From Marsupella aquatica (Eukaryota > Plantae > Marchantiophyta), in assembly GCA_973895155.1 (NCBI GenBank), contig OZ316899.1:124001-188000 (forward strand): a stretch of DNA of 64,000 nt, read 5' to 3'. This document shows, one piece after another, positions 40,581-62,600 of this stretch; the stretch's first letter is position 1, and each line of letters begins with the position of its first letter. The position numbers were made by a program, and so were the translations under genes. Under the pieces are notes generated by a model. The model was not told where the DNA came from. It ran no database searches and worked only from the letters and a program-made list of their open reading frames with translations.

Positions 40581-43500
40581 CTCACTGTCTAGTTGACCAA
40601 GATGTGCTTCCATATTCCTTAACTTTAACTGTGCAAGCGCTGTAACTACTTGCCCCTCGAGAACCATTTTTTCGTGCCCTGCAGCTTCCCTCTCCATGAG
40701 CAGCCTCTCTCTTGCTCCTTCTTGTTCCTGTGAAGAGAACCAGTTAACAGATTTGTTTAAGAGACATCCTAGCCAGCTGGAAACGAATCATTTCTCAATA
40801 ATTTGATTAGCATGAACTCCGAACAGTCCGATATAAACTTAGCAAAGGGATAGAAGTGACTTTGAAGTACCTTAAGGTCCTTCGATGCAGCTGCCATTTC
40901 CTTTTTCATGGATTTGATACTCTTCTCTATGTCTTTCAATCGAGTTTCTCGGTCCCGACCATGCTCGTTAATTGCTCGCTCCAGGTCGGAGGCTTTCTTT
41001 ATGCATTCATTGTGATGGTTCTCCTTGTTGTCTAGGTCCTTCTTTTCTGCGTCCAGCTCGGCCTCCATTGTTGAGATCGACTCACTTAGCTGACATCGCG
41101 CAGGTATTCGATGTCAACGATACATAAAGCTGACAAGGACCCGACTAAACACTTCGCTACTCATGACGACTGCACTCTTCAAAAATCCCAAGAATCTTGA
41201 CTGTAAACATGAGAAAGAGCGCTACTATTGAAACAACAATTTGCGCCCGTAAACTTAAGCCCAACAGTATATCTAACTCGTACGGGTAGCCATACACGAG
41301 GGGCTGAACTCGCTTATACTGTCAAAGCTCTGATGCCAAGACAGTAGACCGTAAAAACCTAAGAAGGACATCCTCCCTCATTTTCCTCACAATAAAGTGA
41401 TTCTCAGACACGTTGAATTGTCACTGATGAAACATGTTTGGAACCGAGAAATTGCAACAAACCTTGTGATGTTTGCTCTGCTCAGCCCTGGTTTCATACA
41501 GAGAGAGATCATATGACTTCAGTTCCAATTGTGACTTTAAGTGGGCATATTTCTTCTGCATGGGTGCCAACTTCTCAATCTGCAGCATTCGCATGTACAA
41601 ATTAAGGACAACGGAGGTCGTCGTACATTGGATCAAAAATCTTCACGACCACCAGATGTAGCTATAAGAACCCAGTCTCAACGGGGATGGACCAGGTATA
41701 AACAGATCCTGTTCTACTGCGTCATGTATAAACTCGACGTCACGTCCAAATCAAACATATATAAAAGCCTTACCTCTTTCTCGATCTTTGAAAGTGCCTG
41801 AACATGCTCTGCCAAGCTGCCCTCCGCCTCTGCTAGTGCATGAAGTTGCATCAGGAGTTCCCCACCATTCCTGGAAGGAAACATTAAATGAAATACTTGC
41901 ACTGCGACTTCTGCAGGACATCTAAACTTACGGCGACACTATGCTTCTACGTTACTCTAAGCAGAGACGGTACGCATGAGGAAAATCTGCCCAGCGTTTG
42001 AAACCTGTATAGCTCAATTTCTTTACTTCGGATGAGCTGATTGCAACAATAGCTCCATTCCACAACTCGGACGTTCGTACAAAGTGAATTAGCTCAGAAA
42101 CGGACCTGCGCGAACCACCGGTAAGAAGACCACGAGGTTCAAAAACATCCCCCTGCAGGGTCACCGACTTAGTATTGACGTCCTTGTGGAAAGCCACCTA
42201 CACCAGCCGATACTTCAGCGAAAATCTGCTGAGTTTACTTCGAATATAATCATTTTACTCCAAGGCTAGCATGAATATAAAGTCAACTACTGGTAGGGGT
42301 TTTAGTATTCAAGAAGTCTGCACTAATGAGAAGGGTCAACTTTATCATAAGGATCTACAATTTCAAATATGCAATTGCTGAAATTCACCTGTTTGGCCGT
42401 TTCAGTATCATTACAGACAAACGCTCCACCAAAAACGAAAGCCATAGCCGCCTGCATTATGACATTACTATATCAGAATGTTCTTTACTTCAAACGTTAG
42501 ACAGACGTCAATAGAATTGTTAATACGTAGTACCTTTGAATCGTCTACTTGGAGACTAACTAGATTTGCATACGCTAAAGCAGGAGAAGCTGATCTCTAA
42601 ATACGACAGGAAGCTACATTTAACTTACTTGAAGCTCGTCAGGGTAGCCAACGAGGGACAGTGCTGGTTTTGCCCTGGCAGGACCCACCTGTACGAGACA
42701 AAAGCTGCTCAGACTGTACATCTTAAGGCCATCATAGCGAAATTTCGATTTGGACTAAGCGAAGCACTGAGTCACACACACCAGATCTGATTGCTCAATA
42801 TGTGAAAGATCCAACGGCTAAATTTAAGGAACAAGACATTTGCAATGCAACATTGTCAGGGAACCATCTTCAAACGTAGCACCCCTTCGAAAGAATCAAA
42901 CAAAAGAGTGAAGCATTCATTCTGAGGATACGAATAGTTTGCAGTTCCCACCTAAAGATCATTTTCTCAACCCCTTTATATCTCACAACCAACCATGGGT
43001 TCCGGCATCTGCTGAAGATAAATAACTATTACGATTCGACATAAATCTTTCCAATCTAAGAAGAGAGCACTGAAAGCGATGCAAGATGGGAACCTTTCTT
43101 TAGCGAGAACATACGTTAGAAAAGAAATCATACCAGCTTGGCCGCTGCCGCCTGAGTTCTCGAAGAGATGGGGTTGGCTTGAATCTTGTTGAGAGGAATG
43201 ATGGTAATCCTTCGGCGCAGCCCACCTTTCTCTAGGAGCAGTTTAGCAGTTTGCTCAGTGTCCACTACAATATTATAAATTTTACTTCCTGTAATAACCT
43301 GTTCGCAAGATTTGTACTACCATTTCAGGCTCCTGATAGTGTCTCAAAGTTAAAATGTGAAGCCACACCATAGCAGTTTCATACAAAGAAATACAATATG
43401 AATTCAACAACAAACATGGGAGTTGGGGATCACACACCTCAAGGGCAGTCATAGTAGAGGCATCATTCACCTGCACAAGGCGTGGTACTGGTCCTTTAAC

Positions 43501-46039
43501 CCGTGACTTCTCGAATCCCCTCTCAGGGTCATTGTATGAGAATTGAAGGCCCGAAAGTTCCCCCGTAAGATTGCTAACCTAAGTTGTCTTGAGTCCCTTT
43601 ACCGTTTCAGCCTCGGTTCTCCGGCTCTGGAGTGCAATGTTCACGTCAATGTTTGTTAGGTTGTCGAGAATCGTCCAAGAGAACAACAGCCTTCATTAAA
43701 GCTGAGAATGACTGTGCAATTCCAATTCGTGACTTGTTATTGCACCGTGTTCAGATAAGGGCAAAACAACAGGTTGACGAAGGACATAGAATACAACATA
43801 ATTAAGAGCAGATTTCCACGCCCAGCAGACGAGAACTGCACCTACACTTAACCCTTGTAGACATGCTAGAAGCCAGAAATTCACAGCAGAAACATGCGCA
43901 AGGTCATACAATTGGGCCACTACATTCCCCGCACACCTAAGAACAGGTGCTAATCAAAACAATGGGAGTTCACAACTGTGGGAGAACCTGTTCCAGGGAA
44001 TTCATTCGGTCCTCTTCGAATCCTAGTTTATTTATGGCATCTTGCAGCTTCTCCAATTCCGCCTTACTTGAGCGCAGCTCCTCCTATGCAGCAGCTACTT
44101 CGTGTTGCTTGGAATTGAAATGCTGTTGTTTTGCTTTCAGCTCTTTGTCGAGATGTTTGATCTTTGTTTTGCTCTGCTGCACCTCAGTCGGAGCTTTCCC
44201 TACCGCAGCATTTGCATCATCTCGCTGGTCTGCCAGACTCTTTTGTTCAGCCCCACTAGCCTTCCCTGCTTGAATCCCCTGAACCAAACGAATTTCGACG
44301 AGCCACTGACTTTTCACCTGGACTCTGCTGAATGGACGAAATTTGAATCTTCAAAGTAAACCCTTCAGCTGGTGTACTGTTCTTAGACAAAAACATATTG
44401 CTATGAACATGCTAAAGTCAGCATCGATAGCAGATTATTACCAGTTTTATCAGTGTTGGCTCAATTCCTGTTTGCATCCTTAGAGTTCAAATAACTACCT
44501 GGTAATCTCGTTCAAGGTCTTCCAATGTCTTTGCCTGCTGCTCCACTTTCTCTTTCAGACCTGAAAATTCTTCCTCAGCTTGAAGTTCAGCAGCAGTTTT
44601 GGCGGCGATGACACCATCCAAATCCTTTACATTTCTTTGCAGCTGATAGATAACAGCCAGAAAATTGAGGTGAGTAAACAGGGGTACCTCCCATGATACG
44701 GCTCATGTACCAAAACCTGCCTGCTTTACAGTTTGGCGTCTGAGATTGGTTGCATACCTGCTCAGCAGTAGCTTTCTCGACGTCAAAAGACTCTTGTTTT
44801 GCATTGACAGCAGAGTCGACCTTCACAAGAGCTGTATAGAGCTTATCCACCGCATCAGACAAACTTCTCATGTCACTATTCATCTGCTTCTCTTTGGCCT
44901 CAGTCAATGCAGCAACAGAAGCCTCATTCTGGGCTATTTCTTCCTCTAATCTTACCAACGGCAGATAATTTAATAGCCTCAACCTTGTCTTGCATTTCGG
45001 CCACCTCACCCGAAGAAGCTTCCTTCAACCTCCAGCCTCCGAAAAATTGAAAGCAATGCAGAATCTGTCGAGACGATCCACCACTGCATTGCCGGAAGTC
45101 CACTGTTGGTACTGCGCTCGTTCTTTCCATAGCTTCTCGAGAGCTGGAAGGATGTTTTGACTCAAAAGGTTGTCAATTTCATCCACTTAATTTTGCCTGC
45201 TTTTTTTCCAGAGTCTTGAGAGCGTTCTCTTTTTTCGACTCGTACATCTTAGTTCCAGCTGCCTCTTCTAGCATTGACAGAATCTCAGGCGGCTTCATGT
45301 TGAGTACTTTCGTGATACGACCTTGCATGATGAGAAAGTGAGGATTGTTGATATTCAGCTGTACGGAGTGGAAGAGATTTTGGACCTGGGTGGGCTGCCT
45401 TACGTGGCCATTTATCCAGTACTTGTTCCGTCCACCAACGATAATCTACAGTATGACAAAAGACCATATAATCAGACAATGCCTGACCATGGAATACTGT
45501 GCGAATCGAAATGTTCTCATGTTCTGTCTGCCACTCATTGGATCCGTATCTCTCTTGGCTATTGATCATCAAAATATTTATTCACGAGGTGTGGGGAGCA
45601 TCGGAAGAAAAGACTGACTGTTTCCAGGCCAACAGAGACGGGTGTCTCGGCAAGAGGGCCAACTTAATATCGGAAATTGAATGAAATGAAGTTCAGATAA
45701 ATTCGTGAGGGGTAAACTTACCTGGCGAGTGACAGTAATCTCACTCGAGTCTTCATATCCGATAGGACTTCGCTTACGGTTCGAATTGTCAAACAGAATT
45801 GAAACTGTTGCTTTTGTAATTCCCGCCTGCCCTTGCTTGTAAACCAGCTCTTGCAAGTTGCTTGCCCTAACTTGCTGCAAATTCGTAATTCCCAGCACGA
45901 AGCAAATAGAGTCCAAGATGTTTGACTTACCTGATCCATTCAGCCCTGTTATTGCGTTGAATTGCTGATCAAAGCCGGAAACCACAGTCCTTTGAGCGTA
46001 CGACTTGAATCCGTCCAAGGTTATCTCCTTCACATACAT
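40581..46039 (-). pseudogene. SMC2: Condensin subunit SMC2 (CAP-E) pseudogene, 3'-truncated
   Basis: Exon 1 (45722-46039) [14 protein letters not shown]...[19 protein letters not shown] (Walker A). Further exons: 44758-45445, 44499-44642, 43988-44278, 43438-43626, 43134-43298 (hinge, GGLRRRITIIPLNKI), 42629-42688, ~42106-42197 (SVTLQGDVFEPRGLLTGG), 41774-41870, 41463-41579, 40871-41089, 40581-40727. Frameshifts in exon 2 (extra TTAA at 45187-45190; also ~45030 and ~44953) and TAG stops at 44084 and 43579. No LSGGQ/Walker B exons found downstream. Confidence 0.9.
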
Positions 46040-46809
46040 CGCGCCAGCGTCCCCTGGACGACGACAACCTCTGCGCCAGACATGGAGGTTTGATGGCCAC
46101 CAACATCTCTACATGATCTAAGGACATCCGGGTGCCTATCCTCGCAAGCTCACAATCCTTGTAGAATTCACAATCTGCTAAGAATTACTTGTCGTACTGG
46201 CTTCGGATTGCTCAGTTGCTATAGTTGCTTCTCGGGGACTTGGTATCGAGCTTTGCGTAGCTACATGCTCACGAATCCGGTCATCCCTGTTAGGTTCGCG
46301 TTACCACTTTTACACGGCCTCTCGTCAAGTCCTTTGGGCACACAATTCCTAGTAAGGGCCCTACCTATATACGTATACTGGATGTTCTTCTGCGTTTCGA
46401 CCTTACATTGCTGGGCAACTATACTTCTCACCTCTGAGCGCCCAAGGAAGCGGGACAGAATCTCTTCTTCAGCTCGGGATACTGTCCATCCTGGTTCAAG
46501 TCCTGCTCATTTCTTGCATGACGTCTCCTATTGCCTGAGCTCCTTTTATTTCCCGTCACAATCTACATCAATTTTGTTGCCACTTGCTCGTTACTTGCTT
46601 GTTGCCACTTGTCGTCAATTCTTCGTTTTGTATGCACGACACTTCAGTTGCAAAGGGTTCTTTCTTGGAGGGCGATAAACAAGAGCACTCGCGCCATAGT
46701 TTTTCAGAGGGCAATGTGCGGGTATGACGGTGGGTTGCTTTGGGGTTTGGATGGAAGATCTTCTCATACTTTTTCTTCTCAGAACTTGTAGTTTTGATTC
46801 TCAAGTTTT

Positions 46810-47156
46810 GATGGCAAAGCTGGGATGATTCATAAAAGAGTCCAGCAGGAGGAATTTGATCCTGGAGAAGATACCGCTACTGCTATCAAATTCAGAACAA
46901 GAGTGTTATTACTTGGACCAGCATGATTGCGGGATACGCTAGGAGTGATCATGTTCAATCTGCACTCGACATTTTCAATCTAATGCGCCAAGAAGGCGTG
47001 AAGCCAAATGAGATCACGTATCTGAGCACCCTGAATGCATGTGGCAGCCCATTAGCTCTAACATGCGGAAAATAAATTCATGAGCATGTTCGACAGGTCG
47101 GCTTTGAATCATCCGTGCGTGTAGGGTCTGCTCTCGTACTGATGTACGCTAAATAG
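46810..47156 (+). pseudogene. PLS-class pentatricopeptide repeat (PPR) fragment
   Basis: NKSVITWTSMIAGYA...ALDIFNLMRQEGVKPNEITYLSTLNACGSPLALTCGK*IHEHVRQVGFESSVRVGSALVLMYAK*; stops at 47073 and 47154. Confidence 0.9.
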
Positions 47157-47510
47157 TTCGCATTTTGACCCGAAGCTGTCCTGACGAGATGTCAAGGTCT
47201 CTCTGGTTTGAGAGTCGAATGACGGATTGTGAATGAATGAGTTGACAAAGATCCACAAATGATTTTTGACCTGAAACGACTTCACCATCATGTGAGCCTT
47301 CCGAATCATAATGAAGTCCTTCCAAAACATCAAACACATTAGTCTTCAGGATGTCAAAGTGTTCCCTGAAGAGCTTCTTGGCTTCCCCTTCAAATTTAGT
47401 TGCTGCAAACTTCCGAGCGAGTTTGAGCATCTGCCGTACATTATCTACTCCTAATCGTCGGCAAAGCTCAGCCTCGCAAAACTCAGCGTCGATGATTAAT
47501 TATTTAGCAT
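47157..47510 (-). pseudogene. BTB/POZ-associated (BACK-like) fragment
   Basis: DAK*LIIDAEFCEAELCRRLGVDNVRQMLKLARKFAATKFEGEAKKLFREHFDIL resembles the 'L...CE..L...L...NV...L.LA..Y....L......F..V' helical region that follows BTB domains; in-frame stop upstream. Confidence 0.45.
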
Positions 47511-47911
47511 CTAGAACAAATTGGAAGGGATATCTAGTGAAGGCCGATCGCGATGTAGCAGTGATGACAAAACAACGTTGTAGGTCCTGTTTGGAGGCCA
47601 ATTCAACGACGGTGGTTTGTATCAGCCCATCAAAAGTGGAATAATGATCAGCGGAGGTCAACTATTTTTGTAAATTTGTAGCAGGTCCTAGTACAGAACC
47701 ATAGTACTGAAAGTTGCCCTTTCTTTTCCCGAGGGGACATTTATGGCAGGACGTGATTGTTTCTCACCTAGAGATAGCCGATGGCATCACAATCTCTCTG
47801 GTGCTCCAGCCAAGCACAGCTCCTTGTTCCCAGAGTTACTGTCCAGAGTGCTAACTTACGTCGTGGCAGTCCTAGTGTGAATCAAGCTTTATCAGGCCCC
47901 AATAAACCTGA

Positions 47912-48022
47912 CAGAGCGGCTACATACTGAGGCTTGATTCCAATCTTATCTGAGCATGCTTTGTCCCAGAGCGGCTACATACTGAGGCTTGATTCCAAGC
48001 TTATCTGAGCATGCTTTCTCCC
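47912..48022. repeat. Tandem duplication, 2 x 55 bp
   Basis: CAGAGCGGCTACATACTGAGGCTTGATTCCAA at 47912 and 47967. Confidence 0.9.
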
Positions 48023-48927
48023 AGATGGGAAGTCTGACCTCTGGGTCCCGCCCCGTAGCATCTGCTCGTCCCAGTTGTTTATCGAACTGTCCCCATCGCC
48101 CATTTGATCCCTAGGCTGTGTACAGCTGTAGCCCCTTTTCCTCCTTGCCCCCGCACTTCCGAATTGCAGCTTGAATGAATGTGCACTTTGTAGCCGACTG
48201 AGCAGCCAGGTGGATCAAATCAGCTTTAGTATTATGTCAGTCTTTTCCCTTTGGCCCAGTGTCCAAAGCTGCTGACATGGCTGTTCTAATCACATTGGCT
48301 TGCTACAACATTACTCCGACAGCATCTACTCTCAGTGACCCAACAGCATCGCGATCCCTACTCTCAGTGACCCAACAGCATCGCGATCCCTAACTACTCC
48401 GCCAAATTTTCCAAAGCTCAGCACAGTATTGACTTTACACGTGACCTCTTAAGCAAACCATTCATTCCTGTAGACTCAAGCAACCGATGCTCAGAGTCTC
48501 ATCGCCTTCGCAGATCATTGGGGGGCAACAAACCACCGGCAGCACTTGAGAGATAGAAGGGATGCATGCCGACGCGGGAGCTCAATCACCACTGAACAGC
48601 CCCGCCTGGCATCACCATTCTCTGGCTCGTGGGGTCCCGCCTTCATTTCTTCATCGTTTTGCTTCTCGTTGGACTATCGCAGCTTGAGTTTAGGGTCTTG
48701 TCGTCTTGAGCTTCATCGAGGAGTCTCTAACATGTGTACTTGTCGCTCGTCTGGTTAGATCGACTTTGTATCGACTGCTGCTGCCAACAGATCCTTGTGG
48801 TGAGTTCTCCCTTCTCTAGTTTGAATGTAATATCTTCCCTCCATTCTGTTGTGCCTCCCCCTAGAGTCCTGTGGGCAGGATAGAGATGGATCCTCCGAGC
48901 TTGTATAGGAGGAGAGATTGATGGACA

Positions 48928-49188
48928 ATGGTTCAATTAGCAAAGAGGCGATTTGATCGCATGCGTAAGTATGCAGAGAATGATGTCATTGTCCCGGCGA
49001 AGTTAAAAGAGTTTCTGAACACAGAGCAAGGTGAAACTGAGGTTACATTGGGTGATGCCGAGAAGATCATCAATGAGCAGATGGCTCACGAGAATACGAT
49101 ATTGATGAAAGCGAAGCACTCCTTCACATTGGATGCATTCCTCCGGTACCTTCTCGACCCGGTTGTCAACATTGCTTACTTAAACAAG
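48928..49188 (+). CDS. PLC: Phosphoinositide phospholipase C first coding exon (EF-hand-like domain); downstream exons not found in window
   Basis: KYAENDVIVPAKLKEFLNTEQGETEVTLGDAEKIINEQ...FTLDAFLRYLLDP...LNK|GTGAGA resembles the plant PI-PLC N-terminus, with the donor just before the expected VHHDM X-domain start. Confidence 0.75.
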
Positions 49189-49613
49189 GTGAGACGAAAC
49201 TAGACGCGTCAATTTTTCCGTTTCTCATGTCTCGAGTAAGGCACAAATTAGAGTGGAGCCAATCCAGTACTTCACGGTGAATTCTAGCACACTATTGTGG
49301 CTGCGGTAGTCGGCAGATCGGTGCAGATTGACTTGTGTGTTCCGACAATGAGTGATTCTATAAAGCTGTGAAGAGGGTCTATATATGGCGGATCTTTATA
49401 GGTACGGATGGCTCATAGGCAGTTTTGTGACTTTCGTGGTCGGAAGCTGCCTTCAATCTGTCCCGAGATAAGGCTGGGAAATGCTTTCCATATTCAGGGG
49501 AAACTAGGTTCTCATTGTGTGTAAATTAAGGCTTCAAGAAAAAATGACTAGTCTTGAGGGCTATAGTTCAATTTTTATTGATCATTGATCTGAGGTTTTG
49601 TCCTTCTTCTACA

Positions 49614-49712
49614 TTGCAGGATGTTGTGTATCTATAGTGAGAAATAATTATATCTCGTCATTGAGTTTGATGACCTGGACTTCAAGAGGCATGGACTTCT
49701 CCCCACATTTTG
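49614..49712 (+). pseudogene. Degenerate CDKA-type cyclin-dependent kinase exon fragment
   Basis: With frameshifts reads LQDVVY..SEK*LYLVIEFDDLDFKRH/MDFSPHF versus CDKA [29 protein letters not shown].F. Confidence 0.55.
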
Positions 49713-50397
49713 AAATTACATTCTGGTGGGTGCAATAGGTCCAATTTATATGTGTGGTGCAACGTTACATTGAAAAACCTCAATTGGTGCTTCTACTACT
49801 AGAGCAAGGTTGAGGTGAGCCGGGGAGTTGGAGTTTCTATCTAATCTTTGCAATTCATATTTCAATGAGATCTGTGCAGACACATTGACCGTGTATTTTT
49901 CTACAAGTTTTATTCTTCAAAAATCCAAAAAATGACATTTCCACAACCCACTCAAGTAAGTAACATAATATCTATTTTTTTCAATCATTTTTAAAAAAAT
50001 TATTAATATAATAGACATTATGGATTTAAGTAACTAAAAAATATTATATTATTACAAGTTTATATTAATTTTTTAATCAAAATTCTGATTGGTAATAAAT
50101 ATTTACTATATTTAATAGTGTAACAGTTTTATTTAAAAATTTTGGAAAACAATTTGATTAGTACTGATACAAAAATGCAAATTGACAATTTTGCAGATGC
50201 TCCATAAATGAAGGGAGAGGAGAAAAAATGAAAATAAATTTCATGAATATGGCGCCGAATTTTCTATCATAACATTTTGTTCAATATGGGATTATCTAAG
50301 CAAATTATGTGAATCTAAACAACAATTTATTTTATATTGGATTTTAAAAAATGAAAATATATTTGTATATTTTGTTACACACATTTTACAAATAAAT

Positions 50398-51573
50398 GTG
50401 TCCAATTTTTCAAGAGCTAAATTTTTGAATGGGTATAACAACCGCAGAAGTGCAATTTCACCAATTCTCCCTCTTCAAACACTTCAACAAACCGAGAAAA
50501 TCTTTCATCATCATCAACAGAGACAAAAATTTCCTCCACTATTGAAAAAATTCATGGGAAAATTTCACATCCTTAACCTATCCCAACTCCGTACCTTACA
50601 AGTAGAGAGGGTAGCTTCTTGTAAAGTTGACAATACATTCTCTTCAACACAAGTAGAAGTGCAACAAATATCAAAATCACAACTGAAAAAATTGACTGGA
50701 GTGATAATGGGAAATTGGAATGAAGACATGACTAAAACCAATCATAGTAATCTTACATTCACATTTGAGTGTTATCCATCAAATTTTCTAGTGATAGAGA
50801 AATCTGAAAATATTGTTTACTTTTACGACAAGTCAGGGAAAAAGCCTTGGCTTGTAGCAATGCTTATGCACCAACAAATATTGGGAGTGACAACATTACA
50901 ATTCATTCGAAAACTTTTGAGTGCATTGTTTGTTGCTCATTCTCCATTTCAAAGAGGCGAGGGGAAAAAAGCTTTTGACAGCTTCATGACAGGATATGGT
51001 CCTTGGAATAGCAGTTACATGGGTGGCCGTTTGACTTATTACACACACCAGAAGAAGATGAATACCATTTTCGATGATTGCCTTGATGTCAAAGATTTTG
51101 AGAAGTGGATCGATAAATATTCACATATTGAACTTATGGATATTATATTGGGGCTTTATATGTGGTGGTGCCCAGAGATGATAGAGTGTTTTTTGGAATA
51201 CTCTCATCCGTACTTACTATCATCTGATCGTGACAAATATCATGGAAGTGAAGAGCAGATAGGGGAGAATGTTAGACCTAGTACTTACCAATTATATATA
51301 AGTGAGGATTATTGTGTGCAAACACATGCTGATGATGATGCAACTGACTTCACCTTAGCGTATGCTAGTCATCCTGACCATTTCCTTTCAGCAATCGATT
51401 TTGTAATTCCAGAGTATGGAATTCGATTGCCAATTAGAGATGGAAATCTATTTGCATTTCGGAGCGATGTTGTTCATGGTACAGGCTTTAGAATGAAAAC
51501 ATCGAATCCTGCATATGTTGGAGCTATTACCGTGAATAAAAACCTCAGCAGACTGATGCAAAAATTACATTAA
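50398..51573 (+). CDS. Intronless TET/JBP-like Fe(II)-dependent dioxygenase (first ATG 50554, 339 aa; frame open from 50398)
   Basis: HxD motif THADDDA (51325-51333); DFVIPEYGIRLPIRDGNLFAFRSDVVHGT with the distal His (51475) 50 codons later; upstream QRG...MTGYG...GRLTYY. The pattern fits compact TET/JBP DSBH enzymes. AT-rich, no internal stops. Confidence 0.65.
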   Translation: MSNFSRAKFLNGYNNRRSAISPILPLQTLQQTEKIFHHHQQRQKFPPLLKKFMGKFHILNLSQLRTLQVERVASCKVDNTFSSTQVEVQQISKSQLKKLTGVIMGNWNEDMTKTNHSNLTFTFECYPSNFLVIEKSENIVYFYDKSGKKPWLVAMLMHQQILGVTTLQFIRKLLSALFVAHSPFQRGEGKKAFDSFMTGYGPWNSSYMGGRLTYYTHQKKMNTIFDDCLDVKDFEKWIDKYSHIELMDIILGLYMWWCPEMIECFLEYSHPYLLSSDRDKYHGSEEQIGENVRPSTYQLYISEDYCVQTHADDDATDFTLAYASHPDHFLSAIDFVIPEYGIRLPIRDGNLFAFRSDVVHGTGFRMKTSNPAYVGAITVNKNLSRLMQKLH

Positions 51574-52479
51574 AATTATTGTGTAGATGTGCTCTCCCGG
51601 GGCAAGCTGAGAGCGCTTGGAGGGGCTACTCAAAGTGGTGAGTGCTCGTACGGTGGAGATGACACCATGGTCATTTTGGATTTAGCCTGGTCATCATTAG
51701 ATTTGGTATTGAAATTCAGATTCTGACGTCATTTTAGCGATTCTTTCAAGAAGAGTAAGGGTTTGGCATAATCTGGTTGAAAAATGGAATGTTGTCATCA
51801 TGACTTTGCAATATTGGGCATGTTGAGGTGTGAAAGGTAAGGCATGTTACTTGTTATGGGGGTGATATATTGAAATGGGGAGGTTTTGCAAGATAGAAGA
51901 ACTCAAATAAATCAACTCAAAGGTGGAATTGACATGATCAGCACACGTACCCTTGAGAGTAACAAACACTTTGATGATGAGGCACCAACCACAAGTTGCA
52001 AACCCCAAAGGACAAGGGTGGGTGTGGATGTCCGGAAAATGGTCTTATTCTTGTGGGGTTAGTGGTATGCATTCATTGTATGACTTTGTAGAAGAAACAT
52101 ACAGGCAACTTCACCTTGTTTAGTAAATCACCCTTATTGGGCTCGTTACTTGCTTCCCATGGGCTGAAGATACAACTGTAGAGATTCTATATAGGTGGGC
52201 ATCCAAACTCATCAAGGGCATAGTTACACTTGATTTGCGTGAACACCTCCAGTCATCAAATTATTGAATGTTGTCCAAACTAATCTTCTAAGCCATTTTG
52301 GTTTGCCATGACACAACCCATGCAGACCATTGAAATAAGCACATGTCAAACTGATTTTTTTGAATACCCTGTCTGATTCTTGTAGGCCCGCTTGTACGTC
52401 CATTACAAGGAGAGTGAATTGCAGAATTGGCCATTGTTTCTAACGGGTCTGGAAGGCTTGACAAGGTTAGTACATCTTA

Positions 52480-53120
52480 ACACTTGCATTTTATGATTGA
52501 CATGAGGGCATTCCAGCACTCATGTTGCAAGGCAGGGGGCTGTTTCACCTGGATTCAATTATGATAAGAATTACATATAAAAGTAGAAAGGAAGAATTAA
52601 ATTCACATCCTTTATTGCCTCCTATTATTTTCACCTTCCCATGTACTTGTTTCGTCTATGGTATCACATTATTTCTGGGGGCGGTGGTGGTTGGAAAAGG
52701 TTGGCACATTTTGACACTTGCATTTAACAATTGAGATAAGGGCATTCCGGCACTCATGTTGCAAGGCAGGGGGCTGTTTGACCCGGAGTCAATCATACAA
52801 AAATTATATATAAAAGTAGAAGAAAAAAAAACCAAATTCACATCCTACATTTCCTCCTACTGTTTTCCCTCTCCTGCTTGTTTCTATTATGGTATCATAT
52901 TATTTCTAAAGAAGGAGGGGGCAGCTCAAAAAAGTTAATATATCTTGACACTTACATTTAATGATTGAGATGAGGGCATTCCGGCACTCATGTTGCAAGG
53001 CAGGGGGCTGTTTGACCCGGACTCAATCATACAAGAATTACATATAAAAGTAGAAAAGAAAAACCAAATTCACATTCTACATTTCCTCCTACTATTTTCA
53101 CTTTCTTACTTGTTTCTATT
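52480..53120. repeat. Tandem repeat, ~3 x 234 bp
   Basis: GGGCATTCC(A/G)GCACTCATGTTGCAAGGCAGGGGGCTGTTT, with the ATG at 52522, 52756 and 52990. Confidence 0.92.
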
Positions 53121-55879
53121 ATAGTTGTAGTTTGCCAGAGAGAACCAAAAGCACACTTTTATGTCTCTAAACTTTTATGAACCCTAAAGTTCCACTGACC
53201 ATTTGTCTTATGAATCTATACAACACAGCGGAGTTATATGAATTCACATGGTCCGAGAATTCCCAAGATTACAGGGATTTATGAAAATATACATTTTGAC
53301 TAGGATGACAAAGATTTAGAGTAAAGATCTCTTTATTTTCACACAAAGTGCATTTTGGAATGACATGGGAGTTTAAAAGTTTACATGGATATCCTCTACG
53401 AATGCATGATTCTTTCAACATCCCATCCGAGCTTATGACTCTTTTTGGTCTTTCGCCGTGGTTTAAAAAGCAAAAGCCAACGCCCGCTGAATGACTCCCT
53501 TTTTGCTAAAAGGCGTTAAAACAGAAGCTCAATTTAGTCAATTGACACATTAGCTGTCCGCTATAAAGTTGGATTGCACGACATCACGAGTGACGTGTTT
53601 ACCATGTTTTGGGAGCTATTCCTTCGCAGTAGCTGTAACCTTCTCCCAAGCCTGGTGGGTTGTGTTGTTGAGAGATCGCTACTACTACAGTACTCGTTCT
53701 ATTGACGGACGATCAGCTGGGCAGGAAAGCAAGGAGCGATACAAATCAGACTTCGAGATTTGTAACTCGATTCTGACCTCTGTGTCAACTAGTAACATTT
53801 GGCAGTACTATCTGCGGGTTTCCTTCTCAAGCTATCACCAATGGAGAAATCGAGTCGTTGGTCAGTCTGTTTTACTGGGCCATTGCACCTTCATTCGCCG
53901 GTGCCCCATGTCAATTGTATCAGAATTTGTGAAATCAAGATCTAAAGTGCCTTGGTCCTCTTAAAGCGACAGGTTGCCAACCAGCTTTCATAGCAGATCG
54001 GAAGGAAAAATTGAACTAAGTCTGCCTCACTGAAGGTGCATGTTTACAGATTTTACACGTCTTGCCTCTACCACTTCTGTTGACATTTTGTCCTAGCTCA
54101 GTGACTGAGGTAGACTTGTGATGATATCCGAAACTCTATGTTAAGTGTATGCGGAAAAGAGATAGTCCTATGAATATCTTAAGAACGTCCTTGAACTAAA
54201 GGACATGAGGGGCATTTTGACTAAAGCTTTGTACAGATCATTTAGAGTAGGTCCATATCAATAGACATAATTTTACGGCTGGAGTTAGTAGCCATTCGGA
54301 TTAATACAACATGCACGGCACCTTAGGCATACTCCAAATCCCACCTTGTAATTTTACTGGAGACCCCAGTTTTGATCAGGTTGACGGCATTTTGTCTACT
54401 CAATTGATTCAGAGCCCTACACCAGCTTGCCAATTTGTGATGGCATAAACGAAGGAATTTTGCGTCCTCATCGGCCGCTGCAGTCTAGCTCGTCTACCAG
54501 CAAGACGAGCGCGAACCATACTTACACCATAATAGGTTCAGATCCATGATTTGGGAAAATAACCTTCTTTGGGAAGTGTTTGCGGCTCCAGATGGGACCC
54601 GGCCCCGTGCCTATCAATCTCATGAGTGCCTCTATATTATTTGCCTTGTTTTGAGCAGTCACTTACATAATCGTACTGTCTGGAGTCTCCAGACAAGAAG
54701 GTTTGTTTGATTTTTTGTCATCCCTGATCCACATCGTGGGTCGTCTCCTCGATTTAGTCACATTTTTGTTGTATCTGATTGGCATGTACGTTCCGTTTGT
54801 GAGTACGTTCTAGTGAGAATCCTCCTTGTTACTACCTACTCCAACCACCCTGGATTGCAGTGCGTGGGTGAGCAGAGTCTCTTTCTTGTTGCCTCGAAAA
54901 AAACCAAAAGAACTCCATTCAATTAGTCAGCATACAGAAAGGTGGAACCCCTGAAAGGAGCACCAACCCAGGTGGACCCAGAAAGGAGCACCAACCCAGG
55001 TGGGCTGAAGGTCCATGTGTCGGGACCGGTGAAGCAGAGTCTCTTTCAAGCTTCTCCTCTCGGTGGAAAATTCCGAGTCCCAAATCCCAAGGGTCCAGCC
55101 CAGGTCTCTCCTCCAACCTTACTCAACCCCAAAAGTAGATTATCTGGGACAGTGGGATCGCCTCGGTGGATGGGAGGGGCGGGGGGCTCCAAGATTCCCC
55201 ACTGCAGCCTCCCATGGGAGTCTGGGCCTTGTCTCAGTCCTAATGCAGGGGCGGATCAAGAAGGCTCCAAGAGGGTTAGTTTTCTAGAGTTAGAAAGTCC
55301 GTAGCCCCTTGTGTATCCTCAATCAGCCAGCATATTGTCAGATTATCGTCAATATATTCCTTTGACCTATCTGCCTGTCCAATTGCCATTTTAGTTATTG
55401 TAATGCTCGATCACATTGGGAGTTGAGCTACAAACAAAAGAATGGACGCTTCAAGCTGCCCAAAGGGCAACGTGACTCACTGCCCAAAGAAATAGATTTC
55501 CTTTAATTTGGTCTGACTGTGTGTGACGCCGCCGGTACGGCGGTTAATGAGTGATTCAGTCTAACTGCGCTCGGCACGCGCGTTAGGTGGGTCTTAGGCC
55601 GCTATTATTAGCATAACGACAGTATTTAGGTAATCATTAGGGGTAGGACATCATTAGGCAATAAGGGGGACTTCAGGTTCGGGCTGGCGGCGGGTCGCTA
55701 TTCGCACACCCGGGTTACGAGTGTGGAAGGGCCCCTCCCTCGGGTCCGTATAACAAACTTAAGGAAGCGGCCACTGACGCACGCTAACTCAGACCGGCGG
55801 AGTGGCCGGTACACCACAAGCGTGAGCGGTTCAGCCTATGGGCGTCGAGGAGACGTCGGGGATCGACAAGCCCTCAAAG

Positions 55880-55987: not shown

Positions 55988-56638
55988 ATGTTGCACACGA
56001 TCCTCTCCAGCTCGGCCATTCGATTCTGGACGCAGTTCCTATCTACCGGAAGGCACTTGGCCGATTCATTGAAACACGCCAACCCGCGCCGATACGAAAT
56101 CGAACGCGAATACGAGAGAGCCATCCGCCTAGCAGGACGACACCACTACGTCCTTAACTTTGACTACCCGTCTCGGAGCGAGCTTTACCGACCAGCAGAG
56201 GTATCTGGGTACTTCTTCAACGGAGACAAATATATCGGGTTCTGGGAAGCATTGCTTCGGCTTCCGGACGAGGTCTTCAATATCCCGGGTACAATCGACC
56301 TGCAGCGACATCACTTCGACCACATCCCTGCCCGGGTTCGGGCTGTCATTAACGGCGAGTCCAGTACCAACCGTTCGACAAGAGCGTCCGCACTCGCTTC
56401 GGAGAACTTCTACCAGCACCTGCAGAGCTTCATGGGAACTCGGCCATCAACCAACATGACCAACTCAGCCGGGCCCGTACCCGTACCCGTGCCCATGCAA
56501 CCTCAGGCTCAGCTTCAGCTTCAGCCTCAGCCGCAGCCTAGCCAAACCCCACCACCTATCACCCAGCCAGCACAGGTACGCTCCGTCATCAACGCTGTGG
56601 ATCTTAGCGATGACGACGAGGCTACCCCACCCTCTTGA
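55988..56638 (+). CDS. Gypsy accessory ORF1 (216 aa, unknown function)
   Basis: Open ATG-initiated ORF; globular N-terminus homologous by eye to 18596-18900; Pro/Gln-rich tail. Confidence 0.7.
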   Translation: MLHTILSSSAIRFWTQFLSTGRHLADSLKHANPRRYEIEREYERAIRLAGRHHYVLNFDYPSRSELYRPAEVSGYFFNGDKYIGFWEALLRLPDEVFNIPGTIDLQRHHFDHIPARVRAVINGESSTNRSTRASALASENFYQHLQSFMGTRPSTNMTNSAGPVPVPVPMQPQAQLQLQPQPQPSQTPPPITQPAQVRSVINAVDLSDDDEATPPS

Positions 56639-58632
56639 CCAGGCGGCCCAGAGGAACAAGCGCTCGGGGGGCCGACACTATATCGTCCCCACCCCCTTCT
56701 CTGACCCCAGGAGCGGCCCCAGTAGACAACATGGTGACCGTGGCCGCCCCGGGCCCGTTACCAACCGCAGTGGCACTCCCCAGGCCCGATCGGGAGGATG
56801 GGGAAGTATCACCTTCCCCGAGTCAGTCACCGGGAAAGAAGAGGAAGGAATCCGCCACTACATCCGGGTTACCGTTGGCCACGGTAGCCGTAGCCAAGGT
56901 GACGATGCACCGCATGGGGGAAAACGTTCACAGCAACATCCTCCATCCCAAGCATGCGGTGTACCTGAAGACTCAGGGATTTGAGCACCTCACCTCTCTC
57001 CCCTGGAACACTTGCAGGTACTACGGGGAGGACATGACAGAATTCGTCAAGAATTATGACGACGTACGTCAACAGACTCGGCTGCGGGGAAGGAATATGT
57101 CCCTCACAGAAGAACGGCTCAAGATGATCTTTGGGTTACCCGAAGGTGACCATCGAGTCGAATCACGGGCTCCCGGGGGCAAGGGGGCCAAGTACCAATC
57201 TTCAAGTTTTCCCTCAGAGGGAGCAGTAGACAACGGGTTCGTGATGAGGACCTGCCTCATGCCCGAGATAGCTGAGCGGCTGGAGTTCCAAAGGTACGCT
57301 CTCCACATGATGGAACCCCGGGGGGAGATCTCCGCCGCCCAGGTTATCCAGGTCGAGAACTATCGACCTAGGAAATGGGCATCGTACTTCGCTAAGAAAT
57401 TCCATGAAGAGATGGAGCGGCGAAGGAAGACGCTGTACATTGGCGGGAAGGCGTATTTCGCTAGCCACATCGAAATCATTCTTGAGTGGTACGCCCGGTT
57501 TGATCGACGAACCCTTCCCCGCATCAACGTTACAAAGCTGGTTCCAGCTAGGTGGGTGTTTCCGGCATTGGAGAGACGGCCCCAACCTGAGGCCCGAAGT
57601 CCAGTGGACACGCCAGCTTCACCCACCCCACCTCCACAAATAGCTGTAACCGTAACCGAGGAGGCGCCGGAGGGGTCGGTCGTTGCAACCGTTGATGCGA
57701 CCCAACTAGCCGGGCTAAGTACAGAAGTTGGTACGGCAGAGGTCTTACCCGAACCCGGGTCTCCCAAGGACCCGCCGGTGGCAATTCCGGAGAACCGGAC
57801 ATCGCTGCAGGAGGACACTCCAGCCCCTTCCAACGTTATGTCCCCAGGGCTAGACGTCACTACCCCGGCCCCTGCGCGTGTTGACGTCTGCCCGTGCCCA
57901 AATCCGGACAGGCACAACTTGGACCACCCAGAACTCTTCGTACAGGGTACGTTCCTGAACGGGCTTCTGGGAGATTTCTCTCATCAAATTGCCCGGGATA
58001 CCGGGGAGTTCATGGCCCGGAAGGTAGCCTGTTTCTTCAATCAGGAGTTGGTTGCCGCCGTAAAGGCAGGTCGGGCCGAGTCGGAGGCCCTTCAGAGGAT
58101 AGAGCGGTACCGGGTGGAGTCCGTGTACCTAAAGAACAAAGTGGCGGCTCAAGAGGCTGAGCTTCTGGCACTACGACCCAAGGTTGCAGCCGCCGATGAG
58201 TTGTTAGCAAAGGCGTACGCTCTTACCGCCCTAGCCGAACAGGCCAAAGCTGGGAACGAGGCCAAGATTACACGACTCCGGAACCAGATTGACAGTTTGA
58301 ATAAACAAGCTGTCACCTGGCAGAAAGACCTGGAGGAGGCCGAGGAGCAAGCCCAGCGGGACACGGCGGAGATAGCTACGCTGCAGGCTGAGATGGCGCG
58401 GCTCCAAACCGAGGCCGAGAAGCAGGACCAGCTGGCGGGTAAACTGACGAGCGACGCCCAGCAGCTGGAGGAGGCATGTCAGGAGGCAGCAGAGGAGACG
58501 GACGCGGCGAGGCGAGAGAACGAATCTCTGCTGGACCAGGTCCAGCTCCTCAAAGCGGACAATGACAGGCTTCGAAGGCAGCGGGATGGCCGTTCCCATT
58601 CGAGCGGCTCTGGCAAGCGTGCCAGGCATTAG
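56635..58632 (+). CDS. Gypsy accessory ORF2 (Athila ORF1/PF20167-like domain + Pro-rich linker + long coiled coil); first ATG 56731
   Basis: 666 open codons; DMTEFVKNYDDVRQQTRLRGRNMSLTEERLKMIFGLPEG motif; heptad-rich C-terminus ending in basic SGKRARH. Confidence 0.8.
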   Translation: MTRRPRGTSARGADTISSPPPSLTPGAAPVDNMVTVAAPGPLPTAVALPRPDREDGEVSPSPSQSPGKKRKESATTSGLPLATVAVAKVTMHRMGENVHSNILHPKHAVYLKTQGFEHLTSLPWNTCRYYGEDMTEFVKNYDDVRQQTRLRGRNMSLTEERLKMIFGLPEGDHRVESRAPGGKGAKYQSSSFPSEGAVDNGFVMRTCLMPEIAERLEFQRYALHMMEPRGEISAAQVIQVENYRPRKWASYFAKKFHEEMERRRKTLYIGGKAYFASHIEIILEWYARFDRRTLPRINVTKLVPARWVFPALERRPQPEARSPVDTPASPTPPPQIAVTVTEEAPEGSVVATVDATQLAGLSTEVGTAEVLPEPGSPKDPPVAIPENRTSLQEDTPAPSNVMSPGLDVTTPAPARVDVCPCPNPDRHNLDHPELFVQGTFLNGLLGDFSHQIARDTGEFMARKVACFFNQELVAAVKAGRAESEALQRIERYRVESVYLKNKVAAQEAELLALRPKVAAADELLAKAYALTALAEQAKAGNEAKITRLRNQIDSLNKQAVTWQKDLEEAEEQAQRDTAEIATLQAEMARLQTEAEKQDQLAGKLTSDAQQLEEACQEAAEETDAARRENESLLDQVQLLKADNDRLRRQRDGRSHSSGSGKRARH

Positions 58633-59652: not shown

Positions 59653-62600
59653 ATGCCCGTCACTCGTTCTCAAGCAGCTTACTTGAGGAGATTGACCAGC
59701 GAACGAGAAAGTGCAACCACAACAAGCTCCGACTCGTCGGGCTCGGAGGACTCGCAATCGTCCCGACGTATGAACATACACCCGGGACCTTCGGGGTCCG
59801 GTTCGACCGGCCCTGCTGCGGTTCCACCACCACCACCACCACCTATGGCAGCCGCTCCACCGGTGGCCCGCGCTGCTCAGGCACCCCCACAAATATCGCA
59901 ACGATCGCGATTTCATTATCGACCTTTCAAAGGGCGTCATGGGGATGATCCGGATGAATGGTTGGATGAGTTTGAAGCCACTGCTAAAGCTAATGGGGAA
60001 GACGCCATTAAGCTAACCGTCCTCCCGGGAGTGATGCGGGGAGAAGCTCGTCCATGGTACAACTCGTTACCACCCGGGACTACCTGGGCACAATTCCAAG
60101 CTGCATTGCTGCAGGAGTTTCGTGCCATTGGATGAGAACAGCGTTCTCTATTAAAGATTGGCCAGCTTCGCATGGAAAAAAGAAAGTCCCTGCGGAAGTT
60201 CATTCAGAAGTTTCAGAAACTTGCGGCCAAGATCCGGCCCAGGCCAGGAGACGCGCTCCAGCTTACATGGTTCCTTCATGGTTTGCCCACGAATATGCAA
60301 TTCTGGGTACGCCAGAATAATCCAATTTCAATGCAGGCGGCCATAGCGTGCGCCGAAACTTACCGGGAGTCCACCTATAACTCCCGGCGGAGCCAGCGAG
60401 CACGCCGCAGGAAGGGTAAGTACGAAACCTTCAGTGATAGTGACTCCGAATCGGACGACGAGAGGAAGAAGAAACGCAAGAAGAAGAAGAAGAAACATCG
60501 TTCGACCTCGTCCAGCTCCGAGACGGAATCCAGTTCGGATTCAGCTTCAAGCATCGGATCCTCTACCTCCAGTTCATCAGGAAGTGACTCGGAGAGCGAA
60601 AGCCGGAGCAAAAAGAAGAAGAGACGAGTGAAGAAGGAGGGGAAGATTAAACCCCGGGCGCGAAGAACGATACCAGATCCAAAGGCTGCCGAAGCAGACA
60701 AGCTAAACGAAATCATGGATCGACTCAAAGCACTGTCAGTACATCTTGCGGAAAAGCCGGTGGAGAAGAAGAAGCCATCTGAGATTCGAGCCCATGCGTG
60801 GTGTTCAAAGTGCTTCCAATCCGGCCATGTGGTGCAGGAATGCCCAAGGTGGAAGAACCGAGTTCACCAAGTAGAGCTGGATGATGTTGACAACCCGGGC
60901 CCCGAATCGGAGTCCACGGAGTATTTCTTTGAGGACCCTCCTGATTCCGTGTACCAGATTTCAACGGTAGGTCCGCGTAATTTAGCGGGTAGAACTGCGT
61001 ACCCCTACCCAAGTAATGGCCGGAGTTTCCAGGTTATCAGTAACCCGAGCATCCCTCCTAAGCCAGGGATTTGGCGGTCCCCGGTTTGTTACAACTGTGA
61101 AAAGCCAGGACACTTTGCGAGGGAATGCACCGAACCAAGACGTCAGGGAGATGGCCGGGGCACCCCACTATGTCAAGTTTGCAAAACGGAGGCTCATTCC
61201 ACGGCCATCTGTCCGTTGGTAATCGCTGCTCGAACGAGTGCGGCTAGACCGGCCCAGGCTGGACCAGTCACGAGCGATGCAGTCGTCCAAATGATTGCTG
61301 TAGAATGGCAAGATGACAACACCGAGTGGGTGAATCTGGTGGACGTGGTGGAACACCCTAATCCATTGGATGAGGCCGAGTGCTACCGAGTGTCGACAAG
61401 GGCCGAACGGAAGGAAGAAAAGACAGAGGAGAAACGGAGGAAAAAGAAAGATACTACTCCGGTGCAGCCAGCGATAAATATACCCCCGGAAAAGGACGAT
61501 GACTACCGACGGGACGACCCAAAGCTGTTTTTCCCCCGCATCAAAGAATTGGTAAAGAAACAGCTGGAGGCTTACGAAGCTCGGGAATACCAGAAGGCAA
61601 TCGATAAGGACATCAAAGCAGCCGAGACAGCCCGGCGACAGGAGCAAGAAAAGCAAGATAAACAAGAGGAAGCCAAGCAGCAGCCAACGAAAGACACAAA
61701 GGAGGACTATGATATAAAGGAGGACGTGAAGAGTTGCCCGGTTACAGCGACGGTGGGGCAACTGCTGCAGAACAACCCACAGTACAGACGACAACTGAGG
61801 GAGTTGCTCATGGGTCGCCGAAGGAGGAGACTACCCCGAGTTGGGAGTGCGGACTGCAACATGATATGCGAGGACCTTGGAGCGCCGGACATCTCGATCG
61901 AAATTAATAACTGTACCATCAAGATGGTTCTTGTAGACGGAGGAGCGGGAGTCAACATCATGACTGAAGAAACGTCAGTCAAGTTAGGATACCTCACGTA
62001 TCAACCCACGGCCCGAGCTATCAGATTAGCAAACGGGGCAAGGGTCCTCCCATTAGGCACGCTCACACGAGTGCTCACTCTGGTGGGAGGGGTAGAGTTC
62101 TATCTCAACTTCTTAGTCATGAGGCCGGTTCGTCCCTCCTCTTATCCGGTTCTTCTGGGCAGGCCGTGGTTGTACGGTGGCCGCGTAGTCACGGATTGGG
62201 GAAAGAAGGAGCTACGGTTTGGGGAACCCACCGTACGGGTATCCTGGGCAATGGACGATTATCAGGGAGAAACCCCACAAGGACCCGAGGAATATGATTC
62301 GGAGACCTCGGAGGAAGAGGAACTCAATATGATCGAACTCATCTCGTCCCTATCCGAGGAAGATGTCTTCGGAGTTGAAGCAACCCGAGAAACACATCTC
62401 CTAAATTACCCGAGGGCTGCCATTGAGTCCACCCCAAGCACATCTACTGTCGGGGATGAGGAAACGCACGAACAACTCGTCGAGACGGAGGACACGGCTC
62501 CAGCTAAGCAGGGAGCCGAGGCTACTCCTTCCATTTCAGAGCCTCGTAACCATGAACCAGCCCAACAACCGCCTGAGGCCGGAAACTCGAGACCGAGACA

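Follow-up and report, generated by a model that had tools for sequence, protein, structure and literature searches.

A divergent, predicted TET/JBP-like dioxygenase gene with an early stop codon in a plant genome

To determine whether a plant genome, from a group thought to lack TET enzymes, carries a gene related to the enzymes that oxidise methylated DNA bases, we analysed an open reading frame on the forward strand of a 64,000-nt stretch of Marsupella aquatica DNA (contig OZ316899.1, positions 124,001 to 188,000; hereafter the window, with all coordinates relative to its first nucleotide). A first-pass annotation, made from sequence alone, had described an intronless TET/JBP-like dioxygenase with an atypical co-substrate site at 50398-51573. 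What it observed in the sequence was confirmed. The ORF spans 50398..51573 (391 aa, GTG start, TAA stop at 51571..51573), and the Fe(II)-binding HxD...H motif comprises H310 (51325-51327), D312 (51331-51333) and H360 (51475-51477), giving the 50-codon spacing that had been described. The strand pattern FVIPEYGIRLPIRDGNLFAFRSDVVH and the tail GTGFRMKTSNPAYVGAIT were both present, and no Arg occurred 9-15 residues after H360, the only Arg being at +5 (R365). An open frame of 459 codons at this base composition is not a chance event (0 of 20000 shuffles had none; analytic probability 2e-16).

Two qualifications apply to this gene model. First, the GTG at 50398 is only the mechanical ORF start, as homology to a relative (P0001) and confidently modelled helices continued 61 codons upstream. 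The likely true start is an in-frame ATG at 50197..50199, which gives a 458-codon gene comparable in length to relatives P0001 (456 aa) and P0002 (449 aa). Second, codon 5 of this longer frame is TGA in the assembly (50209..50211), so the frame described earlier as intact is intact for the catalytic domain but not for the full-length gene in this allele. Contigs assembled from two other public sequencing runs, X1 and X4, read CGA (Arg) at this position (50209 T>C; 127.4 of 127.4 in X1 and 426.9 of 426.9 in X4), a C-to-T difference at a CpG, and give an intact 458-codon ORF. The first in-frame ATG after the TGA lies at 50554..50556 (M53 of the GTG ORF, M114 of the model), and a product starting here would keep the whole catalytic domain. 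The intervening segment, 50212..50553, encodes a conserved N-terminal helical extension (pLDDT 72-93) that is open in frame but has no ATG of its own. Immediately upstream, 49920..50196 is very AT-rich (GC 18%, no CpG), forms the left part of an AT-rich island and is the putative promoter and 5' leader; its left edge is crossed by X1 and X4 contigs.

We next asked which family the protein belongs to. Sequence searches did not answer this. The window protein had no Pfam hit at E values up to 10 and no hit in a PDB sequence search, and family profiles recovered no TET from the PDB. Word-indexed homology searches added almost nothing, the single protein finding one hit, the family profile two members already identified and the divergent relative P0042 only itself, and thus no sequence-profile bridge to PF20515 and no phylogeny with reference TETs could be built. 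An hhalign comparison of two of our alignments (A2 against A3) was circular and served only for residue correspondence. The protein therefore belongs to a small family, 41 representatives, that Pfam does not annotate, in which the catalytic motifs are conserved at 23-40% identity. Six of 42 members gave PF20515 hits, all sub-threshold (best E 0.0014, 19 bits against a cut-off of 27), and one gave a Tet_JBP hit (E 0.13).

In contrast, structural comparison gave a consistent assignment. An AlphaFold2 model (pLDDT 84, pTM 0.87) matched all four solved TET/JBP types best, with VIA-align Z scores of 17.3 for TET2, 17.0 for CMD1, 15.7 for CcTet and 14.5 for NgTET1, compared to 11.9 or less for the next group, AlkB/ABH. 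This held both as a re-ranking of Foldseek hits and in an independent scan of 48,161 chains. The top 22 Foldseek hits in the PDB were all CMD1, TET2 or CcTet, led by CMD1 (E 2e-8). AFDB clusters returned 'Tet-like 2OG-Fe(II) oxygenase' and 'JBP1/TET' entries (E 4e-15 to 1e-8), with fungal TET-like hits covering model residues 20-451 and so including the N-terminal extension. Swiss-Prot models returned JBP2, JBP1 and CMD1, and a search of the Atlas returned Mucoromycota, PF20515 and PF12851 clusters. The predicted double-stranded beta-helix catalytic domain occupies 50590..51570 (model residues about 126-452), the structural match to TETs beginning at model residue 115-131. That the best hits might be oxygenases that do not act on nucleic acids had been named beforehand as grounds for rejecting the assignment, and this was not the case.

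The metal-binding residues are conserved across intact relatives; H310 and D312 (51325..51333) form part of a family-wide HxDxD and H360 lies in an HGT motif. The co-substrate site, however, differed between the two clades of the family. The Arg at the start of the last strand (strand VIII), which binds the distal (C5) carboxylate of 2-oxoglutarate in TET2, NgTET1 and CcTet (PMC7854593, PMC11040006), is Ala372 in the window protein (His+12, 51511..51513) and Ala, Val or Leu in 17 of 17 sequences of its own clade (clade A), whereas Arg is kept in 4 of 4 distant relatives (clade B; P0036, P0037, P0038 and P0042). The chain ranges of the structural alignments are consistent with this placement. 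Clade A instead conserves an Arg at His+5 (R365, 51490..51492) in 16 of 17 sequences, a candidate relocated 2-oxoglutarate-binding Arg whose role is inferred from the alignment alone. R186 (50953..50955), in an RG.GK...M.G.G motif invariant in both clades, is a candidate equivalent of the N-terminal active-site Arg of TETs (TET2 R1261, NgTET1 R224, CMD1 R244, CcTet R205), again inferred without residue-level structural comparison. The residues with which TETs recognise 5-methylpyrimidines were not conserved. The Asp/Asn at HxD+3 is A315, variable across the family, and the aromatic residue six positions after the strand-VIII Arg is T378, so the substrate cannot be assigned from these positions, although CcTet also deviates at HxD+3 (Gly331) yet is active on DNA (PMC11040006).

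Comparison with individual characterised enzymes placed these differences in context. Fungal TET/JBP dioxygenases (PF20515, 2OG-FeII_Oxy_6), such as Coprinopsis CcTet (PDB 7vpn/7w5p/8jkk), are often carried by KDZ, hAT, EnSpm or Helitron transposons and were the nearest by fold and by language-model features; they are likewise intronless, multi-copy and often decayed. However, the present host is a plant, no transposase is adjacent in the window, and CcTet Arg385 (His+9), essential for co-substrate binding, and Phe391 have no counterpart here (PMC11040006). Chlamydomonas CMD1 (PDB 7cy4-7cy8), the ascorbate-dependent 5mC-modifying homologue carried by the DNA-1_cRei transposon (bioRxiv 10.1101/2022.06.16.496473), also comes from the green lineage and has the HxD...H triad and a non-canonical co-substrate site, but identity is only 14-16%, and its base contacts Asp350, Phe416 and Arg418 are not conserved. 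CMD1 keeps Arg410 in its sequence but turns it away, blocks 2-oxoglutarate with Trp358 and binds ascorbate through Thr399 (PMC7854593), whereas here the Arg is absent from the sequence. Animal TET2 and Naegleria NgTET1 (PDB 4nm6, 4lt5) share the double-stranded beta-helix core with its TET-specific elaborations and the Fe(II) triad, at 6-13% identity. The window protein lacks a Cys-rich domain or CXXC, and Arg1896/Arg289, Asn1387/Asp234 and Tyr1902/Phe295 have no equivalents (PMC7854593). The kinetoplastid thymine dioxygenases JBP1/JBP2, of the same superfamily, were the top structural matches among reviewed proteins (E 2.5e-7 to 1e-5), but with low TM scores (0.3-0.38 by query), and the window protein has no base-J-binding or SNF2 domain.

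The genomic setting was also informative. The gene sits in an AT-rich island (GC 32-35%) within flanks of 41-45% GC. The CpG observed/expected ratio was 0.49 in the ORF and 0.33 in the 3' flank, compared to 0.73 for the window, with TpG and CpA in excess, suggesting a likely methylated setting. An SMC_N exon (E 1e-30), whose nearest SMC cluster is in Streptophyta, lies beside the island, and a PPR fragment and (CCCTAAA)n repeats also occur in the window. The host is hence at least a streptophyte, and probably a land plant, and the repeat-rich region looks subtelomeric. Multiple diverged and decayed copies were found. Paralogous contigs at about 80% identity over 51392-51542 occurred in runs X1, X4 and X6; among relatives, L004 is 5'-truncated, L007 and L008 are frameshifted and P0007 has lost metal ligands. 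No other TET-like copy occurred in the window. There was no transposase domain among the window's ORFs, no TIR, LTR or TSD around the gene (TIR or LTR pairs sought around 49.2-53 kb), no long repeat pair bracketing the island, and no second recognisable gene on the short contigs of relatives, although an element could be larger than what is visible here.

Taken together, the locus is best explained, with reasonable but not high confidence, as a plausibly intronless gene for a very divergent member of the TET/JBP superfamily of Fe(II)-dependent nucleic-acid base dioxygenases, carrying a CGA-to-TGA nonsense change in the reference allele. Our analysis establishes the predicted fold, the H310/D312/H360 triad and the family-wide conservation of the catalytic motifs; everything concerning activity is inference. 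There was no evidence of expression, as runs X1-X6 have no recorded library kind and their contig depths fit neither plain single-copy WGS nor a clean transcript. In this view, the open allele would encode an enzyme that flips a base out of DNA and oxidises a 5-methylpyrimidine (5mC or T) through an Fe(IV)-oxo intermediate, and its most plausible role would be to counteract cytosine-methylation silencing of the multi-copy element or gene family it belongs to, as proposed for transposon-borne TETs of fungi and Chlamydomonas. We favour 2-oxoglutarate use through a relocated Arg, R365, over a new co-substrate. The first-pass interpretation was thus supported only in part. The TET/JBP-like assignment is strongly supported by fold and the atypical co-substrate site is supported at sequence level; the analogy with CMD1 and ascorbate is not supported specifically; and a transposon-borne or horizontally acquired origin is suggested by the lack of introns, the AT-rich island, the many decayed relatives and the paralogues, but is not shown. 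Its descriptions of the gene as intronless and the host as a land plant are plausible.

Among the alternatives, the strongest, although we consider it unlikely, is that this copy is a decaying relic of a mobile or horizontally acquired TET gene, methylated and eroding by CpG deamination, whose long open frame only reflects recent inactivation. The TGA at codon 5, a second CpG-type difference at 50770 (TGT here, CGT in X1 and X4), the CpG depletion, the many truncated, frameshifted or ligand-less relatives and the lack of a neighbouring transposase are consistent with this. However, the remaining 454 codons are open (P about 2e-16 by chance), all catalytic motifs are intact, two other datasets carry the open allele with a proper ATG, and the ATG at 50554 could still give the full catalytic domain. 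Less likely still is that loss of the strand-VIII Arg means the clade no longer uses 2-oxoglutarate but another co-substrate, such as ascorbate, to write a hypermodified base. CMD1, among the best structural matches, shows that TET homologues can switch co-substrate, but it excludes 2-oxoglutarate by a different route (PMC7854593), CcTet needs 2-oxoglutarate (PMC11040006), and the conserved Arg at His+5 offers a simple replacement. Similarly doubtful is that the protein acts on something other than DNA bases, for example RNA, or a protein or small molecule, and only shares the TET-like scaffold. The unconserved base-contacting residues and a top Swiss-Prot structural hit to S. pombe Cif1, which is not annotated as a DNA dioxygenase, point this way, yet all four solved DNA-acting TET types outranked every other 2OG oxygenase by 3-5 Z units over about 260 residues, including the TET-specific elaborations. 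Contamination or misassembly, for which the GC contrast and the fungal affinity of the nearest large structural clusters might argue, and which had also been named beforehand as grounds for rejection, can be dismissed, as a single 3336-nt X1 contig covers 49435-52768 with 17 mismatches and crosses both edges of the island, an X4 contig crosses the left edge, pieces occur in runs under four organism labels, and host genes and plant telomere repeats lie in the same window.

Reviews describe active DNA demethylation in plants as the work of DME/ROS1 glycosylases and TET oxidation as an animal route (PMC8594673, PMC6073778), and we found no report of a land-plant TET/JBP gene in the literature searched, although prior description cannot be excluded. 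A TET-fold gene family in a plant genome, invisible to Pfam, would provide a directly testable candidate for oxidised methylpyrimidines in plant DNA and for an anti-silencing function of mobile or subtelomeric DNA. The natural Arg-to-Ala change, with Arg-retaining relatives as controls, is a ready-made experiment on how TET enzymes choose their co-substrate, and the nonsense and open alleles offer a ready-made genetic contrast. A bolder possibility, unlikely but not excluded, is that a land-plant lineage carries an active, multi-copy clade of such enzymes lacking the canonical Arg, acquired horizontally as part of a fungal-type subtelomeric mobile-element set. These would write an oxidised or hypermodified pyrimidine (5hmC, 5hmU or a 5gmC-like adduct), giving plants an oxidative route against 5mC silencing alongside DME/ROS1 glycosylases.

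Finally, we examined the immediate surroundings of the ORF. A PLC EF-hand-like ORF at 48928-49203 raised the possibility that it is the first exon of a PLC gene with the TET-like ORF in an intron, but this was rejected as no PLC catalytic motif occurs anywhere in the window. Downstream, the non-coding stretch 51574..51730 remained alignable with relic L004, from another run (blastn, 83% identity over 51315-51607; MAFFT alignment continuing with gaps to about 51730), and is probably the 3' UTR or the tail of the element.

To confirm the gene call, ORF prediction was performed on the window and returned a 391-codon ORF at 50398-51573 on the plus strand, starting at GTG. This ORF contained H310-x-D312 (51325-51333) and H360 (51475-51477), 50 codons apart, together with the strand pattern FVIPEYGIRLPIRDGNLFAFRSDVVH and the tail GTGFRMKTSNPAYVGAIT, in which the only Arg is located at His+5. 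A frame of this length cannot stay open by chance in 35% GC DNA (0 of 20000 shuffles had none; analytic probability 2e-16). The first-pass annotation, which described an intact ORF with a 50-codon HxD...H spacing and no Arg about 10 residues after the distal His, was confirmed in its observation.

However, the true gene is longer than this ORF and the allele in the window is interrupted. The closest full-length relative, P0001 (456 aa, 40% identity), aligned beyond the GTG, and the in-frame translation upstream of 50398 remained open and homologous back to 50212. In the AlphaFold2 model of 50215-51570 (452 aa), these upstream residues formed confident helices (pLDDT 72-93). The frame contains an ATG at 50197, followed four codons later by a TGA at 50209-50211. 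We aligned Logan contigs from four public sequencing runs to 48500-53500. At 50209, where the window has T, the only contig in run X1 (depth 127.4 of 127.4) and the only contig in run X4 (426.9 of 426.9) have C, making the codon CGA (Arg) in those datasets. The gene is then an uninterrupted 458-codon ORF from ATG 50197 to TAA 51573, which matches the lengths of P0001 and of a second relative, P0002 (449 aa). The window allele therefore carries a C-to-T nonsense difference at a CpG. A second difference at 50770 (TGT here, CGT in X1 and X4) was of the same type, and both T-against-C differences within the gene are CpG-to-TpG changes on the window side, which fits methylation-driven deamination of a gene that may itself oxidise 5mC. 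The first in-frame ATG after the stop is at 50554 (model residue 114) and precedes the part of the model aligning to solved TETs, which starts at residue 115-131. A re-initiated product would therefore keep the catalytic domain.

Sequence-based methods did not identify the protein, with no Pfam family detected at E up to 10 and no PDB chain detected by either phmmer or family profiles. An exhaustive HMMER scan of 1.84 billion representatives identified 41 relatives, 9 of them below 1e-30, and most of the 41 were fragments. Six of the 42 family sequences gave sub-threshold hits to PF20515 (Tet-like 2OG-Fe(II) oxygenase; best E 0.0014) and one gave a weak hit to Tet_JBP. In contrast, the predicted fold was decisive. 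The model, built on the 42-sequence alignment, had a pLDDT of 84 and a pTM of 0.87, and the top 22 Foldseek hits in the PDB were CMD1, human TET2 and Coprinopsis CcTet (E 2e-8 to 7e-6), followed by generic 2OG oxygenases. Structural alignment with VIA-align gave Z scores of 17.3 (TET2), 17.0 (CMD1), 15.7 (CcTet) and 14.5 (NgTET1) over 217-269 residues, with AlkB/ABH3 following at Z 11.9 or less, and a Foldseek-independent scan of 48,161 chains ranked the same four first. AFDB clusters returned fungal-type ‘Tet-like 2OG-Fe(II) oxygenase’ and ‘JBP1/TET’ entries at E 4e-15 to 1e-8, several of which covered model residues 20-451, so the N-terminal helices are shared too. Swiss-Prot models returned JBP2, JBP1 and CMD1, whilst the ESM Atlas pointed to a Mucoromycota cluster (TM 0.77 by the hit), a Basidiomycota PF20515 cluster and phage Tet_JBP clusters. 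The best structural hits were thus not non-nucleic-acid oxygenases, the outcome set beforehand as grounds for rejecting the TET/JBP-like assignment.

The Fe(II) triad is intact and conserved in intact relatives. In published structures, the Arg that binds the distal carboxylate of 2-oxoglutarate is located at the start of the last DSBH strand. This is R1896 in TET2 (distal His H1881, offset +15), R289 in NgTET1 (H279, +10) and R410 in CMD1 (H397, +13) (PMC7854593), and R385 in CcTet (H376, +9) (PMC11040006). In the family alignment, four distant members (P0036, P0037, P0038 and P0042) have Arg at exactly this place (R-[FYI]-x-[GS]-V), whereas the window protein and all 16 other members of its clade have Ala, Val or Leu; in the window this residue is A372, at His+12. 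The end-points of the structural alignments fit this correspondence for TET2, CMD1 and NgTET1. In 16 of 17 clade members an Arg is found at His+5, within an HGT-x-[FYW]-R motif. The absence of the canonical Arg is thus real and clade-specific, and the simplest reading, inferred from sequence alone, is that the basic residue has moved, although the pattern rests on a single phylogenetic split and is weak as covariation. The comparison with CMD1 drawn in the first-pass annotation is imperfect, as CMD1 keeps the Arg in its sequence but turns it away, with Trp358 blocking 2-oxoglutarate (PMC7854593). Residues that read the base in TET2, NgTET1 and CMD1 are not conserved here. The Asp/Asn at HxD+3 is A315, which varies in the family, and the aromatic residue six positions after the Arg is T378, whilst the family instead conserves HxDxD. 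CcTet also departs at HxD+3 (Gly331) and acts on both 5mC and 6mA (PMC11040006), so these residues do not assign a substrate.

The gene lies in an AT-rich island of about 1.66 kb (49920-51575), in which the upstream 277 bp has 18% GC and the ORF has 35% GC with a GC3 of 29%, compared to 41-45% GC in the flanks. CpG was depleted, and TpG/CpA enriched, in the ORF and its flanks, with CpG observed/expected ratios of 0.49 in the ORF, 0.33 in the 3' flank and 0.61 in the 5' flank, against 0.73 for the window. This is what methylated DNA looks like. A multi-exon SMC (condensin/cohesin-type) gene is located on the minus strand at 40.7-46.0 kb (40700-46039), its 5' end about 4.2 kb from the TET-like gene and in divergent orientation. 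Its first exon matched SMC_N at E 1e-30 and was nearest to a Streptophyta cluster. Between the SMC gene and the island (46100-49210) lies a mosaic of isolated gene fragments on both strands. This included a PPR_2 repeat (46923-47072, plus strand; E 3e-11), a topoisomerase-II-like piece without a Pfam hit (47109-47430, minus strand) and a PLC EF-hand-like piece (48928-49203, plus strand; E 2e-7), with no PLC catalytic domain anywhere in the window, as well as perfect or near-perfect tandem duplications of 55 bp (47912-48021) and 32 bp (48326-48389). The mosaic resembles either gene-fragment capture by a Helitron or Pack-type element, or pseudogene debris. Plant-type telomere repeats, (CCCTAAA)n, occur at 35379 and 37421 within a block of tandem and nested repeats (34890-38600; units of about 113, 209, 259 and 590 bp), an interstitial telomere or subtelomere-like structure. 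The host is a streptophyte, and the PLS-like PPR fragment suggests a land plant.

Misassembly was ruled out, as a single 3336-nt contig of run X1 covers 49435-52768 with 17 mismatches and crosses both edges of the island, and near-identical pieces occur in runs under four organism labels. Contigs of X1 and X4 share a break at 49435-49482, with the same loose end at 49482. Sequence to the left is a dispersed repeat of higher depth, and the low-copy segment holding the gene runs from about 49482 to 52768. No transposase, TIR, LTR pair or second TET copy was found in the window.

All relatives that could be traced were found on short Logan or ENA contigs of 1-4 kb, as single, intronless ORFs with no recognisable neighbour. 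Several are relics. L004, a relative from another sequencing run (836-1131 of its contig), is a 5'-truncated copy with its stop shifted, keeping only the last 85 codons at 83% nucleotide identity to 51315-51607, with alignable sequence continuing about 150 bp past the stop. Two further relatives from other runs, L007 and L008, each need one frameshift to read through, and the family member P0007 has lost metal ligands. Contigs about 80% identical to the conserved 51392-51542 stretch in X1, X4 and a further run, X6, show that paralogues exist in the same organisms. This is the profile of a multi-copy, mobile or subtelomeric gene family, resembling TET genes carried by transposons in fungi (PMC12730594) and Chlamydomonas (bioRxiv 10.1101/2022.06.16.496473). 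Plavaka-type elements have been reported in streptophyte algae and a moss (PMC13519894). However, carriage of this gene by a transposon, and a horizontal origin, remain inferences, and the interpretation of the first-pass annotation, a TE-borne or horizontally acquired base-modifying enzyme perhaps with non-canonical chemistry, was only partly supported.

Taken together, our analysis establishes the predicted TET/JBP fold, the metal triad, long-term conservation of the catalytic motifs in a family whose members share 23-40% identity, and an open full-length allele in other datasets. What the protein does is inferred: the enzyme would oxidise a 5-methylpyrimidine in DNA through an Fe(IV)-oxo species, and its likely biological role would be to counteract 5mC silencing of the element family. 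We consider it very likely that the protein is a TET/JBP homologue, whilst catalytic competence of the open allele is about as likely as not, and it is an even question whether the reference copy itself is non-functional. Use of 2-oxoglutarate held by R365 (His+5) instead of the canonical Arg is our favoured but tentative reading of the co-substrate site, and a different co-substrate is unlikely.

Reviews assign plant demethylation to glycosylases and TET oxidation to animals (PMC8594673, PMC6073778), and no land-plant TET/JBP report was found in the literature searched, which did not extend to two papers by Iyer et al. that might mention one. The locus described here represents a Pfam-invisible TET/JBP clade, found in a plant, with a co-substrate site that, judged from sequence, has been rebuilt.

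Downstream of the gene, by about 0.9 kb, are three tandem copies of a 234-bp unit (52446-53122; 71-86% identity), and the single-copy X1 contig ends at their edge (52768). Further downstream, two long plus-strand ORFs were identified, one of 665 aa of coiled coil (56635-58632) and one of 1024 aa with a gag-like zf-CCHC knuckle (60172-63246).
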